A stretch of 64,000 bases of DNA from Auanema rhodensis (lineage: Eukaryota > Animalia > Nematoda), in NCBI GenBank assembly GCA_964057225.1, contig OZ059894.1, positions 16,306,001 through 16,370,000 of the forward strand, in the 5' to 3' direction. The notes below the pieces were generated by a model. That model did no database searches. It saw only the letters and a program-made list of their open reading frames with translations, and was not told the origin of the DNA. Position 1 is the first letter of the stretch, and every line of letters starts with the position of its first letter. Positions 32,611 to 40,751 of the stretch are shown here, piece after piece. Both the position numbers and the translations under genes were made by a program.

Positions 32611-34302
32611 TTAGAACAATGCTGATGCAGAGATGGCAAATACGAGCAAACCAGATATCAATGAAGCATAGCCTGCTGTTGATACTGGAGAATCGAGAAC
32701 ATCCATTACATGTCGACGTTGTTCTTCATCATTTTCCTCATCAGCTTCCACTCGTGCATAGTTTTCTAATTAATTAATAAATGTATATGTAAATCATATA
32801 ATTATTAAATTTATATGATACCTCTTCTTTCGAATCTTGCTTCAGCATCTAATTCATCAGAATCATCTGGTAATTTAACCTTTGGATTTTCAGAATCAGC
32901 TAACTTGTATGGGAGAACATGAGCCTAAAGATTATTAAATTACAAATATATTTGTTTTCAAACACTAACCGCCATAATTTTTGCTAAACTTTCGAAATCT
33001 GGAGTGGGCATGGGATTTCTTTGCCAATCAAACATTGAACACTGTAAAGTACGAAGTTCGCCATCAATTAACAGAGCAGCTTCAATAGGTTCTGTTGACA
33101 CAGATTCCATTCGATTTATTGTACGAATTTCATTATTTATCAGTATATCTTCATTGGTTGAAGGAATTGTTTCTACGTTGTATTTCACCTGTAAAGTCAA
33201 AAAATATTTTTTCTTTCTTTATGAAATCATGGATCGAAATCCTCAGCCATGAATTCACAAACCTGTTCTTTAACTGTTGACATGACTGATAACGGTCCAG
33301 AAGAAGTGGGATCGTTTGGGAAGGCAAAAGCAAAATTCTGAAATCAGATAGATTCCAACAAAAGCTATGTCATACAACAATAGTAAAGATTATTCAGATT
33401 TTCGCAGTTGAAGTCATACCTCGTCTTTACAAGCCTCTGGAACAATCCAATCAAGCATCTCTTCAAATCCTTGATCTTCACCCTTCATCATTGAAGAAAT
33501 CAATGTATCAACCAAATTTGTCTGCCCAACACATTTCTTACCCAAACGATCTTTAAAGCAATGCATCAAACACATGGTTGAACTGAAATCAAAATTATTT
33601 GGATGATAAAATACCTTTTATTCAAAACATCTCTTACTTGCACATGTTTTTAACATCAAAAACTTCATTTATCTGATTAGCTGCAGATGCTTGATCGATA
33701 AAACGGGACTGAAGCTTGCAATAACTTTCACATTCAGGTTGCAAATCTTCAGAAGCATTTTTAATACATTCAAGAGAATCTCCGACAGCTGAAATTTAAA
33801 TTTTCAAAAAACCTCAGACCTATAGTTTTATGTCTTACATTCTATATTTTCTAAACATACAAACTGAAAAAGTTTGGCGGCTGTTTCGACAAAAATTGTT
33901 GAACAGCCAGCGTTAACAGCACAACGAGCAGATTCTTGTAATTCACTGAATTAAAGACAAACAATTACTATACTCAGATATTTTTAAATTATCTATGATA
34001 CCTGCATAGCTTACTTACAGCTACTGGATCATTATTTCCTTTCTTAATAACTTTGAACATATCTTCCATATGTGGAATACATGTAGCAAAACATGATGGC
34101 ATTTGAAATGTCGACATCAATCTGGTAACATTCATTGGACCTTTGAATGCACCTAAAAATAAAATATATTCCAAAGATGCAAGCTCAAACACATGACAAT
34201 ACCCATTAATTCAGAAAGAAAGTTAGTCGATGAAATAGGCTGAACTGGATTTGTCAATGCTCCATGTCCAAATATCAGTAGGATTAACAGTGTTAATTGC
34301 AT
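32611..34302 (-). CDS. Secreted/GPI-type protein with chondroitin proteoglycan 4 (CPG4)-like Cys-rich domain; 9 exons
   Basis: Signal peptide MQLTLLILLIFGHGALT; Cys pattern PSCFATC...KLC...ARCAVNAGC...FVC...LECI...PECESYC...MCNSTMCLMHC...KKC...IVPEAC; acidic linker; hydrophobic C-terminus ASLISGLLVFAISASALF*. All introns are GT-AG and in frame. Confidence 0.8.
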
Positions 34303-34801
34303 CTAATATATGAAAAAAATCTTTAGATTATAATATAAACAAATTACATATAATTTATATAATATAACATACAAATATCTATTATAATATTTGTTTTTTA
34401 TATTTATACAATTATACTAAATAAAATAAAAGTAATTCCCATAATATATAATATAAATAAAAAATATATATTTTATATATATAATCTATATAATAATTAT
34501 TTATGTCTTATATACCTTAAATAGAACTTACATTATGTTTGAAAAGATATTTATATTTATATAATTTGATCTATTAGCGCGCCACCATAACAAACAAATC
34601 ATCTAAAAATCAAAGAAACATATTTGTTTTTTGTAAATATATTGATATGCATGTATAGTATATAGTATAATATTTAATTTACTTTATAAAAAAAAGAATT
34701 TTGAAAAATAAAATAAAATATTAAAAATAAATAATTAATTAATATAATATAGTGAAAACGTTATATATTACCGCTTTCGGTGATGTAGTATATTAGAATA
34801 A

Positions 34802-34823
34802 GCACGTGTAAAGTTCACGTGAA
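34802..34823. promoter_or_regulatory. Double E-box (CACGTG x2) in the divergent promoter region between the CPG4-like and H3-like genes
   Basis: gcacgtgtaaagttcacgtgaa lies about 45 bp upstream of the ATG at 34867, in otherwise nearly pure AT DNA. Confidence 0.45.
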
Positions 34824-34866
34824 AGTGTCATCTCATTTTCATTTTTAATTGGTTATATCGGTTGAA

Positions 34867-35070
34867 ATGGTTGTTTCACCATCTTCTTCATGTGATTCTG
34901 ATTGGGATTTAAGAAAACATGACGAAGATACATTATCGTCTGGAAGTTCTTCATCTGAAAGTCTTTTGACAGTGGCACATCATCCAGTTGTAAGATAATT
35001 ATTTAAGATATATATTTAAGATATTATAGTTAACGTTAACACCTCCATCAACACCTGAAACAATAGCTGT

Positions 35071-35101
<31 letters not shown>

Positions 35102-35694
35102 TTGTATAAATATATGAAACTAATCTATATTTATTATTTCAGGATAATATTACTGTGAGAAATCGGAAACGAAAATTGTAATAAATTCCTTTATGTATCA
35201 TTTTTAATTTTTATATAATTTTAGGCCTAAAAAAAATGAAAATGTAGATGAAGTAAGTATTATTGAAATTGAATATTTTGTATAAAATATAATGTTTAGA
35301 ATCTAAGTAAGAATGTTAATGCTCAATGGCAATCAGAAAATAAGTTACAAAAAAAGAAAACAAATATCAAGTTTGATTTACCAAAGGTAAATATTACAAA
35401 TAAAATGAATAATAATAATAATTGTTTTCGAAAACATTTGAAAGTTTGGTTCGTCAAATCATCGAAGAAACCTCAGGCAAGGACTATATGAGAATAACAT
35501 CAGACGCATTAGATATCTTACAAGAAGTAATATTATTTTATATAATATATTTATATTTATAATTATAATTATAGAATGCAGAAAAATATATAACTTATAT
35601 GTTTTTTGTTCAAAGTCAAATGATGTTTGTTAATGGACAAGATTGTTTACAGATTGAACTATTCCGAAGTTATCTAGTCTGCAAAAACTTATAA
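34867..35694 (+). CDS. Highly divergent histone H3/CENP-A-like histone-fold protein (about 175 aa); 7 exons
   Basis: Exons 34867-34989, 35030-35068, 35143-35177, 35225-35252, 35300-35386, 35431-35526 and 35575-35694. The C-terminal part FDLPKKTFESLVRQIIEETSGKDYMRITSDALDILQENAEKYITYMF aligns with H3 [45 protein letters not shown]. This model needs a CG acceptor at 35429-35430. Confidence 0.72.
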
Positions 35695-36104
35695 TATTAT
35701 CAATTGTAGCTGAATAACTATACTAATTGTTACAATATAGTTAAATATATGTTATAAATAAATGTAATACATTTTAACTCTTATAATACTAAGAATAATT
35801 CGAAACATAACCAATATAAAACTAAAAAAGTTTCTATTGAAATTTTAATTTTTTTATAACAATTCATTGAGAGATAATAATCATGATTTGCATAATATAT
35901 TAAATATAAGTTTAAAATATGATTTTTCTAATTATTTTATATTATATTTTATTAATCATTTCTAAATTATTCTATTGTAACTCAGCTGTCAATCAGTTTA
36001 AGTTATTATTCATTTCATTATTTCAATCTTGAAAACGTAGATTATTATATAGTTCACAATTATTTCTTTCAAATATCAAGTTTCCATGTTTTTATTTAGA
36101 GAAG

Positions 36105-36407: not shown

Positions 36408-37916
36408 AATATAATATAAATTAAGAAAACATTTGTTAAAATACTATGGCATGTTGTTATTTCTAATTTTTTATCAGCAATAAGTAATGTTGTTGTAACA
36501 CTTCCTGTAACATTATTCAATTTTGATGCAAAAGAATTTAAAGATTTTAAAGGAACAGGTATACATACTACAATGAAATCTAATAATTTATTTTGTTTTT
36601 TTTTAGTTATTTACAGAATATTCAAACCATTAACATCATTTTCTGTAGAATTAAATCTTTTATTAAGCTTTGTTATAGCTCTTCAAAGGCTGTTTGTTTT
36701 TGTATCTTCCAGATTAACAACATTAATATTTGAAGGGTAAATTTAAATATAATAAATTGTATTTATAAATATATAATTAAAGATATATATTCTATATAGT
36801 TATGTTAACAGTATGGATTCTTACATTTTCAATTACTTTCTTATATGAATATTTCTCTTGTTCATATGTATATGATGATAAATACTATATGTATAGATAT
36901 ATATGTGAAATGAATGAGAAAACTGCTTTAATGCTTAGTTCAAAAGTTGAAATGGTTAAAACTAGTTAATATATAATAATTATTATTAATATGTATTTAT
37001 TATAGTTTGTCATTTTACATAATTTGGCTATTCCTATTATAATATTTATCATTTATATTATAATATTTATTCGTATATATAAACAAAGACGAGTTATAAA
37101 TGCAGTAAAATCAATTACATTTGAAAAAGAAATATTGAAACAAGCATTTATTCTTTTTTTAGCTTTTGAAGTAAAATTTATTATTATTTATAATTTATTT
37201 TAAAATTTTATTTTTAGTTAGGATCACTGTTCTCTATTTATATTCCAAATAGAGAAATTAGATCCACAACAGCTTTTCTATATAATCGAATTGACATGAC
37301 TGTATGTTTTCATTTTGATTTTTGATTTTTTTGATATCATATACTATGACCACGTACTTATTTATACTAATATTATACTAAATATAAAATATTAATATGA
37401 AATGAAAATAATTAATTAATTTTTCAGTTAGGCTTATTATCTGGTGCTCTAACGCCAGTTCTCTCAATCGGAGCATGCAGTGAGATTCGAAATGTTTTAA
37501 ATTTTAAAACATTGAAAAAAACTAAAATAGCAGCAAAAGTTGCATCATCTATCGTAAGCAATCTTTGTAAATCGTGGGTCTTATTCCGATGTCAAATCCA
37601 TACTTGATATAAGTATGTAACAAATAACGTTGTATAAGTAATATTTTGATTTTTACATAGATAGAGAGAGGGAGAGAGAAAATGAGAGAGAGGGAGAGAG
37701 AAAATGAGAGAGAGGGAGAGAGAAAGTAAGAGAGAGAAATAAATATATTTTAAAAAATAACGGAATAAGTACCTCAAACATACATTTACACATGTATATT
37801 TAAAGAAAAAACAAATTTATTCGTATCTTCAGAATTTATTGTAGGATGTATCACCAACAAACATAAACTTGGGAAACAATCGTCCATCTTCTAGTTATTC
37901 GCAAAGCTCTGATTAA
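36105..37916 (+). CDS. Serpentine chemoreceptor GPCR, class X (Srx)-like
   Basis: Eight or nine short exons join in frame, giving about seven hydrophobic segments with FVIALQRLFVF, CSYVYDDKYYMYRYIC and FEKEILKQAFILF motifs. The 3' end is ambiguous: read-through stop at 37607, or a last exon 37845-37916 via atc|gtaag. Confidence 0.8.
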
Positions 37917-38089: not shown

Positions 38090-40751
38090 ATGATTCGGTC
38101 GGTCGAATACCATGATGTTGAATTACATACAACAGATAATGAAATGTATATCATTCATATTAAAGTTTTAAATTAAAATAATTTTAATTTAAAGATTTCA
38201 ATGGAGGGAAAGTGAAATAATTCGATTTATTCCATCACTTATAAATATATTACCAACAAAACGTGGACAGAAACGTATTCAATTATTACTAGATGTTCCA
38301 TTTGATTTATATATAGTAATATACATATACTTGATAAATATATTCATATATATATATATATGATTATATACATATAATATTATAATTTAGATGAAAATAT
38401 TAAAAGAATTTTCTCAAAAAGGATATATTAATGATCAATTATCATTTAGTGATTATGAATATATGTTGAAATCAATTCAACAATTTCCAAAACATGAAAT
38501 AAGAATGCTTGAAGTAAGTTGGATATAGATATTAGAATGTAAATGATAAAAATCATTTTAGGATCATATATTTTCAATTTTATATAAAGATATTTGTAAT
38601 ATGAATTGTATAGGTTTTTGGTTTCTAGCCATAAAATATGAAAATGAAGAATATATTAAAAAGGTAAAAAGAATATGAAGAAAATGACTAATATGTGTAA
38701 TTTTCGGCCAAAATCTTTATATTAGATAATATTTTTCGTGCTTGTGAAGATAAATCAATAGATTATCATTTTTACAGTAGGTAAGTACTATGAAATATAT
38801 TTTATTATTTTAATTATACGTAAATATTAGATTAACAAAAGAACAACTTGAGGATATTATATCAGATAATGAATTAAGTATAAATACAGAAGAAGATGTT
38901 ATATTAATTATATTAACATGGATTGGTATTATAATATATATATATATATAGTTAATATACAGTTAATTTATATATTCAGATGCAGTACCTTTAGAACGGA
39001 CAATTTATCTTAAACGTCTGATGAAACATGTAAGAAAAGATGGAATACGAAAGGTTATCTTTAGCTATTTTCAATTTATTAATAAATTTTTATTTAGAAA
39101 ATGAAAGAAATTGTATCAATGTTACAAACAATTCCTGTATCTGAAGTGATATTCAGTTCAGAACCGTCCAGACATTTCAAGGATAAGGTTCTAACTTGCA
39201 GAAGTTATCAAATGAATAATAACATCTTGTATATACAGTTATTGGTTTGTGGTGGGCATCAATACGATCCAGAAACATCTCAATATGGTCCAACAACTTT
39301 AATGGAAATGTATGATTTGGTTTGTTAATTTTATAATTTGAAAGTAAACTTATCTATATTTATAGATTAATAACCGTTGGATTAAACTAGATTCACAACT
39401 TCCCTATTCTATATCATATCATGCCGCTTTATATCTCAATGATGTATTAATTAATAATATAATATATGTTTATATATTGAATTTTAAATATTTTAATAGG
39501 ATTTATATATATTTGGTGGATCAAGTACTAAAGAAATAGCTTCTAAGAAAGGTGTCAAACTTCGAAATGGCATATGGTATCCAATAGCTGATTTGAATCA
39601 ACCAAGGTGATGTAAACTTTTTTAATTATGCATTACATTGGAAGTAACTAAAGAATATAATTGTGATCTGAACAAATTTAAGATTAAAAAAATGAAATTT
39701 ATAATATAAAATATATTTTTAGAAGTTATATCACAAATTCATGTTGTATATATAATCAGGAGTTATATGTAATAGGAGGACATAATGGACATAGACGGGA
39801 ACGTACCAATGAACTATTTGTATGTTATATATAATATAATATTAATTAAATATACTATATACTATATACTATATAATATATAATATATTTATTATTATTT
39901 ATAGGCAATTGCTAATACAAGATTGAAATCAGTTGAGAAGTATAATCCAGTGAAAGATGAATGGACATTTGTTAGGTAATATTTAACTTTTTTTTAAAAT
40001 CTAATATATTGAAAATATGTTTATTCTTATTATTATTATTTATATAATTATATACATGTAATATTTGAGTGAAATGAATTTTGGACGATCAGATGCTACG
40101 TGCTCAGTGCTAAATGATCGCATTTATGTTTTCGGAGGATTTGATGGAGTTAGGGTTAGATTTTTGAATTAATTTTTCGTATAATTAATATGTTTTAGAT
40201 ATTAGATACAATTGAAATGTATGTGCCATCGATTGATCACTGGACTATACTTGAACCACGTCTTCCCAGTCCTCGATCTGGTATTGAATGATGAAGCATT
40301 ATGTTGCATGTTGAAGTTATTCAGGCTTATCATCCGTAGTATATAACGATCATATAGTATTACTTGGTGGATCTGATGGACAAACACGTCATTCAACAAA
40401 CTTTAGCTTTTATCCAAAAAGTGAAAGTTGGACAATTGGTGATGATATGATATCAGCCCGGTATGCAATTGAAATATTTTTGTTAAACAATCATCTATTT
40501 AAGATCAAACTTTTCGGCTTGTAAGCTTGGAAAGAATATTGTGGTTGTTGGTGGATTCAGTCGTAATGTTCTACGTTATAGCGAATTGTAAGGATATTGA
40601 GTAATGAGTGTCAGCATATATTTTTTTAAATTTCAGTCTACATGAAGATCATTGGCAAGAAATAGCTAGTATACGAGCATCCAAGAGTGCTTTAGCTGCA
40701 GTAGTCATACCACATTCTGATGAAGCAAGTTTATTCAGTGTTAAGATATAA
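38090..40751 (+). CDS. BTB(degenerate)-BACK-Kelch repeat protein (KLHL10/KEL-10/SPE-26-like family); about 18 exons
   Basis: BACK segments NCIGFWFLAIKY...AKIFILDN and LTKEQLEDIISDNELSINTEEDVILIILTWI...YLKRLMKHVR. Kelch repeats LLVCGG, LYIFGG, LYVIGG...LKSVEKYNPVKDEW, RSDATCSVLNDRIYVFGGFDG, IVLLGGSDG and RSNFSAC...IVVVGG. Stop at 40749-40751. One intron needs a CG acceptor (38705-38706) and one a GAG acceptor (40067-40069). Confidence 0.88.

Follow-up and report, generated by a model that had tools for sequence, protein, structure and literature searches.

A putative CENP-A-derived gene of Auanema rhodensis with a histone fold recognisable only in its front part

Gene Structure and Coordinates

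The gene at 34867-35694 lies on the forward strand of a 64-kb window, that is, the whole stretch of DNA that was analysed, which is AT-rich (30% GC) and belongs to a 181-Mb assembly. It is modelled with seven exons, giving a coding sequence of 528 nt, or 175 codons, with a single terminal stop and no internal one (Table 1). The exons contrast in composition with the introns, having 25-38% GC against 4-15%; in the case of exon 1, which ends at a GTAAGA donor, the values are 37% for the exon and 12% for the intron that follows. The introns are short, with 40-74 nt each, their donors are GTAAG, GTATG, GTAAT or GTAAA, and all their acceptors but one follow the pattern (T)nAG; the ends are consensus GT...AG in five of the six introns. 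Exon 3 ends in mid-codon and the frame is restored by exon 4. The introns and the downstream AATAAA that a previous reading of the locus, made from the sequence only, had reported (the latter at about 35757) are both present. Each exon of the gene is single-copy in the 181-Mb genome.

Around 50 bp upstream of the start codon there are two CACGTG E-box palindromes (34803-34808 and 34816-34821), separated by 13 bp, out of ten CACGTG sites in the whole 64-kb window. This pair may be a promoter element of the gene.

Table 1. Features of the gene at 34867-35694 and location of the CENP-A-like gene L033 of the same genome.
Feature	Position	Strand	Description
Exon 1	34867-34989	+	41 aa; start codon at the first ATG of the open frame; acidic N-terminus rich in Ser and Asp
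Exon 2	35030-35068	+	13 aa with PPSTP site; TATAG acceptor, GTATGT donor; phase 0; GC 38%
Exon 3	35143-35177	+	Basic patch, part 1 (RNRKRK); TTTCAG acceptor, GTAATA donor; ends mid-codon
Exon 4	35225-35252	+	End of basic patch (PKK) and acidic stretch; TTTTAG acceptor, GTAAGT donor
Exon 5	35300-35386	+	29 aa, lysine-rich linker; GTTTAG acceptor, GTAAAT donor
Intron 5	35387-35430		44 nt; GT donor, TTTTCG (CG) acceptor; placed by frame arithmetic
Exon 6	35431-35526	+	32 aa: helix 1, loop 1 and first third of helix 2; ends LQE
Intron 6	35527-35574		48 nt; phase 0, directly after the LQE codons; GC 4%
Exon 7	35575-35694	+	39 aa plus TAA; hydrophobic, AT-rich C-terminus; GC 26%
AATAAA polyadenylation signal	35757-35762	+	63 nt after the stop; direct reading
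CENP-A-like gene L033	G000:C7:8218771-8219180	-	Exons L033:1295-1408, 1155-1253 and 995-1111

The Acceptor of Intron 5

The exception among the acceptors is found in the intron at 35387-35430, which has to end in TTTTCG, and not in AG, for the histone-like frame to be read. If the strong donor at 35387 is paired with the AG acceptor at 35444, the histone-like reading is lost to a frame shift, and this splicing was rejected as the main form. The sole in-frame GT-AG alternative, which combines the weak donor GTTTGA at 35371 with the acceptor at 35444, deletes the start of helix 1. The model with the CG acceptor is favoured because the intron then coincides exactly with an intron of L033, which ends in TTTTAG and has the identical place and phase, being in phase 0 and two codons ahead of the F in the F-x-x-LVR motif of helix 1.

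The CG acceptor at 35430 could be a splice-site lesion. A second short intron modelled with a TTTTCG end (38664-38706) is found in a Kelch gene about 3 kb away (38.3-41 kb), and the two introns may mean that CG acceptors are tolerated, or that the assembly systematically loses the A of CAG. That such an acceptor is needed in two genes so close together bears on the splicing of this worm or on the polishing of its assembly.

Histone-Like Similarity in Exon 6

The similarity of the gene to histones is confined to exon 6, which contains the sequence of an H3-type helix 1-loop 1-helix 2 (F-x-x-LVR-x-I ... LQE). When the gene is scored exon by exon, Histone (PF00125) is the top Pfam family for exon 6 (E 0.015, 16 bits, profile positions 58-85), with a score that stays below the gathering cut-off of 26.4 bits. 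No exon of the gene reaches this cut-off, and the sum of the exons could not reach it either because exon 7 contributes nothing. As a calibration, the matching exon of L033 scores 21.4 bits on the same profile (positions 56-85). Exon 6 has a weak secondary match to CENP-X (E 0.12), below the Histone match; none of the other histone-fold families (CENP-T/W/S/X, TAFs, NF-Y) is its best profile, and exon 7 matches none of them. A sequence search of the PDB with exon 6 gives no match at E up to 10.

Exon 6 is nearest to L033. In a BLASTP comparison with the matching exon of L033, exon 6 is identical at 14 of 32 positions (44%, E 3e-6), both exons carrying the string R-x-TS-[DE]-AL-x-x-LQE, and the L033 string RFTSEALAALQE corresponds to RITSDALDILQE in the gene at 34867-35694. 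Measured against shuffled sequences, exon 6 reaches a z of 9.4 with L033, 6.7 with L038, 6.1 with canonical H3, and 3.7 with L040. Loop 1 is two residues longer than in the canonical H3 of this genome, as had been claimed for H3 from the sequence, and one residue shorter than that of L033, which is lengthened by three. In a protein-language-model search (Atlas), the best matches of exon 6 are PF00125 clusters (score 0.90, 203 of 256 features, recognition 2702), and its ten best named neighbours are all Histone clusters. A joint profile made of exon 6 and the L033 exon picks up canonical H3 in a genome-wide search (E 0.002) but no additional divergent copy. The locus was not picked up by a genome-wide search with the exon of L033 alone.

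This failure of the L033 exon to find the locus, the weak CENP-X match, and the lack of any exon at the Histone cut-off are the points in favour of a gene that is not derived from H3, but belongs to another histone-fold family (CENP-T/S/X/W, TAF, or NF-Y) or resembles histones by chance in an AT-rich frame. Such an origin is very improbable, the least probable of those considered here, in view of the best Pfam family, of the pairwise E and z values obtained with L033, of the Histone clusters that make up the named neighbourhood of exon 6 and of the coincidence of both intron positions with L033.

Intron Positions and Related H3 Genes

The gene structure was compared among six H3-type genes of this genome, namely the gene at 34867-35694, L033, L034, L035 (H3.3), L038, and L040. 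In H3.3, L034, L038, and L040, the helix-2 intron is found after ...ALQ. Only in L033 and in the gene at 34867-35694 is it located one codon later, after ...LQE, and the first ten bases of the intron are identical in these two genes. A phase-0 intron before helix 1 is also common to these two genes only; as for the corresponding early introns of the others, that of H3.3 is placed after LPFQ and that of L034 inside loop 1, whereas it is absent from L038 and L040. In L033 and in the gene at 34867-35694 alike, the last exon has 39 codons.

The claim that the gene descends from the H3/CENP-A family is borne out by the match to L033 and by the two introns shared with it, which point specifically to the CENP-A-like lineage. 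The species' own CenH3-like gene is at the same time the best pairwise match and the one with two coincident phase-0 introns, which argues for the common descent of both genes. The likeness comprises the exon for helix 1-loop 1-helix 2, the lengthened loop 1, both introns, the length of the last exon, and a tail that is not of the H3 type. In contrast, the candidate tail exons of L033 add up to about 250 aa and begin with MVRVKP, and its last exon reaches 53.9 bits on PF00125, whereas the gene at 34867-35694 has an unrelated tail of about 100 aa and an unrecognisable last exon. L033 itself would be a nematode HCP-3-like CenH3, as suggested by two features, its tail length and its loop 1.

The genome carries several other divergent H3 variants. 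L034 (G000:C7:7255763-7258120, minus strand) is a second CENP-A-like H3 variant, and thereby a second candidate for the CenH3, located about 1 Mb from L033; it has an ARTKQ-like start, MARTKQQTTRRS, a W at the position of F84 of H3, the loop 1 intron mentioned above, and a last exon that is well conserved. L037 (G000:C8:26925914-26928042) and L040 (G000:C8:26665808-26668091) are near-identical copies of a divergent H3 variant in opposite orientation; L037 lies within about 8 kb of the contig end, and has the first histone-fold exon without the matching last exon. L038 (G000:C72:11441-13742), on an unplaced contig of 30 kb, is a divergent H3 variant with the loop 1 MGDFRMTGG and a last exon that ends in LLNCGKLF.

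The N-Terminal Tail

The tail of the gene, of about 100 aa, is rich in acidic residues and in Ser and contains a single basic patch. All three tail features proposed previously are found in the translated exons: the Ser/Asp-rich start, the PPSTP site, and the RNRKRKLPKK patch, which is interrupted by an intron before PKK and suggests nuclear import of the putative product. The tail is not of the ARTKQTARKS type of H3, and has no ARTK motif. It has no significant similarity to the tail exons of L033 or to H3, and the tail exons find no match in the rest of the genome. The QKKKTNI of exon 5 (versus QKTTNM) could be what is left of the alpha-N segment of H3, at a level that is not significant: the best local alignment of exon 5 with the alpha-N exon of L033 is not above shuffles (z -0.5). 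The gene does show two features expected of a CenH3, a longer loop 1 and a tail unrelated to that of H3.

The Unrecognisable Last Exon

Exon 7 occupies the place at which the remainder of helix 2 should be followed by loop 2 and helix 3. It gives no match at E up to 10 in Pfam or in a sequence search of the PDB, no BLASTP alignment with L033, and, when hhalign compares it with a profile built from five last exons of H3-type genes in this genome, a probability of 0.75%. Its ungapped DNA identity to the last exon of L033 (30%) is at the level of the codon-shuffled control, and the hydropathy correlation between the two is about 0. The Atlas search with exon 7 (recognition 1245) gives no match of at least 0.9. 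Among 1.84 billion (1.84e9) representative proteins, phmmer finds no true relative, with the proviso that a query of 39 aa would miss orthologues below roughly 55% identity; the one match, a tandem-repeat protein of 543 aa, is a spurious artefact. The description of the gene as an orphan, made in the sequence-only reading, agrees with its single-copy exons and with this outcome for exon 7.

The other reading frames of exon 7 are interrupted by stops and are not histone-like. A six-frame scan, from which pieces overlapping 34697-34736 were left out, found no canonical last exon elsewhere in the window.

In the ungapped register, exon 7 keeps only two (E3 and F10) of the 12 positions that are invariant among the five H3-type last exons. 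In this register the 11 residues facing HAKRVTIMPKD of H3 are VNGQDCLQIEL, exactly as had been aligned before, and the equivalents of H113, R116, and D123 are indeed lost. However, this loss is not specific to those residues, as the whole second half of the fold is unrecognisable too: neither loop 2 (RVT), nor helix 3, nor the residues of the four-helix bundle are recognisable in exon 7. At the sequence level, a complete CenH3 histone fold, with full helix 2, loop 2, helix 3, and the CENP-C contact, is not present. The previous description of the product as a histone variant lacking the tetramer interface cannot be maintained in this form, since a complete fold is not supported and no exon reaches the Pfam cut-off.

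Structure prediction was applied to isolated peptides, without alignments. Under these conditions exon 7 folds as one continuous helix (mean pLDDT 82), whereas the control exon of L033 gives a helix-break-helix, with the break at loop 2; the contrast between the two is a weak hint. A three-chain complex prediction with the exon 6 peptide, the exon 7 peptide, and residues 21-103 of H4 has a score of 0.19, which is under the mark and speaks neither for nor against pairing.

Exon 7 might nonetheless complete a very fast-evolving histone fold by supplying the end of helix 2, helix 3, and between them a short loop 2 (NGQD). Such a protein would pair with H4 and enter specialised chromatin, for example that of the germline, the sequence-only reading having suggested sperm or meiotic chromatin. 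The lengths of the segments fit this arrangement, with a helix 2 of about 29 residues across exons 6 and 7, an N-G turn, and an amphipathic end of 16 residues, and the last exon is as long as that of the parent; the NLS-like patch of the tail is also in keeping with it. On the other hand, loop 2 and helix 3 leave no signal in profiles, hydropathy, or residues, ten of the 12 invariant positions have changed, and the single helix predicted for the isolated peptide lacks the break of the control, making a complete fold rather improbable.

Frame Maintenance and Expression

Despite a divergence that has reached saturation, not a single stop or frameshift is found in the 175 codons of the gene. The retention of the open frame was evaluated with composition-matched shuffles of the two exons for which homology defines the borders, namely exons 6 and 7. 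Exon 6 stays open in 7% of the trials and exon 7 in 2%, and the chance that both remain open under shuffling is about 0.0014.

Expression of the gene is only hinted at by the share of its sequence words in four small sequencing runs from one 2019 study, which are probably RNA, this type being a guess. These runs, of 13-21 million letters each, contain 0.32-0.40 of the 31-mers sampled from 34750-35850, a range to be compared with the 0.30-0.43 expected for spliced mRNA of the model. As a sequence, the gene is real, and it is probably live.

The same locus could also be a dying CenH3 duplicate that is leaving through the "revolving door" known from Caenorhabditis, with no functional protein or with a functionless transcript, its open frame being a leftover. 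The erased last exon fits this fate, as it is the most conserved part of any H3, with PF00125 scores of 49-54 bits in the relatives (53.9 bits in L033, 49.1 bits in L034). So do the GC content of exon 7, which is down to 26% against 42% in the last exon of L033 and looks like relaxed drift, the CG in place of an AG acceptor, and the failure to find relatives. Degeneration after a short life has moreover been reported for CenH3 duplicates (PMC9577544). Against such decay stand the uninterrupted frame at saturation, with the low probability calculated for exons 6 and 7, the contrast in GC content between exons and introns, which is still strong, and the 31-mer shares, which are compatible with spliced RNA. 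The acceptor argument is further weakened by the apparently intact Kelch gene, which has the same TTTTCG end, so that CG may be tolerated or may be a quirk of the assembly. Considering both sides, we regard a dying duplicate as unlikely, though a serious possibility.

Comparison with Known Histone Duplicates

In nematodes, flies, and plants, duplication of centromeric histone genes is frequent, and the copies are usually lost or become mildly specialised. A copy that keeps its frame and retains only the front of the histone fold would be an unusual end-point for such a duplicate. It would represent either a snapshot of the death of a duplicate, or the reuse of a histone exon in a non-nucleosomal protein.

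The hcp-3L and CPAR-1 genes of Caenorhabditis are lineage-restricted CenH3 duplicates that keep the parental exon-intron structure, have a diverged tail, and belong to a family described as subject to turnover and degeneration (PMC9577544). These characteristics resemble those of the gene at 34867-35694. However, the hcp-3L paralogues are short-lived copies whose histone folds are still 69-100% identical to the parent (PMC9577544), whereas the gene at 34867-35694 has 44% identity in one exon and is at random level in the rest.

Other similar cases are the additional CenH3-like genes of Meloidogyne (abcCenH3), which are nematode H3 variants with CenH3 features, low identity to H3, extra copies, and an unclear function. 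Contrary to the present gene, in which only about the first 40% of the fold is recognisable, these genes encode a full histone-fold domain, 33-42% identical to H3 (PMC8097292).

In C. elegans, his-69, his-70, and his-74 are truncated or diverged H3.3-like genes, some of them expressed, and resemble the gene at 34867-35694 in being H3-type genes that are restricted to a species and either lack their ends or are strongly diverged (PMC1484599). HIS-70 is H3.3-like and lacks only its last 6-8 residues (PMC1484599), while in the present case 39 C-terminal residues are altered. In addition, the intron pattern and loop 1 of the gene at 34867-35694 point to a CENP-A-like ancestry, unlike those H3.3-like his genes. 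Judged from its sequence, the gene is to be grouped with these lineage-specific offshoots of H3 and CenH3, but as a further diverged one, in which less than half of the fold is recognisable.

Proposed Origin and Function

The explanation that we favour, with a confidence somewhat above even, is that the gene at 34867-35694 is a single-copy, lineage-restricted paralogue of the CENP-A-like (HCP-3-like) H3 variant of this worm, which was duplicated at the DNA level and then remodelled almost beyond recognition with its frame kept. The starting point would be the duplication of the CENP-A-like gene, presumably at the DNA level because the introns are retained. The long parental tail would subsequently have been replaced by the tail of about 100 residues, acidic, Ser-rich, and provided with an NLS-like basic patch, and the last exon, still of 39 codons, would have diverged to saturation or been replaced. 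The reading frame would have been maintained by selection, in which case the product is probably made and probably nuclear, but would no longer be a nucleosome-forming centromeric histone. The formation of (H3-H4)2 tetramers or the wrapping of DNA would be unlikely because loop 2, helix 3, and the residues of the four-helix bundle are missing. At most, the helix 1-loop 1-helix 2 surface that is retained could serve for pairing with H4 or with a histone chaperone. The gene is classified as CENP-A-derived, and not as CENP-A, because the features tested for a complete H3 or CenH3 were not found.

In CENP-A, the helix 1-loop 1-helix 2 surface is contacted by H4 and by the HJURP/Scm3-type chaperone. 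Nematodes have been reported to possess a chaperone of this type (PMC13322267). A more specific version of the CENP-A-derived paralogue, and a highly improbable one, would be an expressed "half-histone", combining this retained surface with a new C-terminus and acting outside nucleosomes as a soluble partner, a decoy, or a regulator of centromeric-histone loading.

Neighbouring Genes and H4 Copies

Upstream of the gene, a neighbour on the minus strand (33414-34302) is divergently transcribed and has a signal-peptide-like beginning, MQLTLLILLIFGHGALT; its exons have no Pfam match. Downstream, the open frames at 36573-37203 on the forward strand show weak matches to DUF621 and to Srx-type serpentine receptors (E 3e-4 to 6e-3), and this next gene is probably chemoreceptor-like. 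These matches, like an H3 of the genome that carries the AAEAY variant, are in keeping with a nematode.

One of the H4 copies of the genome, located in the histone cluster of contig 1 (L001:726-1007, minus strand; G000:C1, around 3.39 Mb), is degenerate, with several substitutions and a reading that is lost after about residue 60. The H4 of the array on contig 3 (L006:603-911) is intact.
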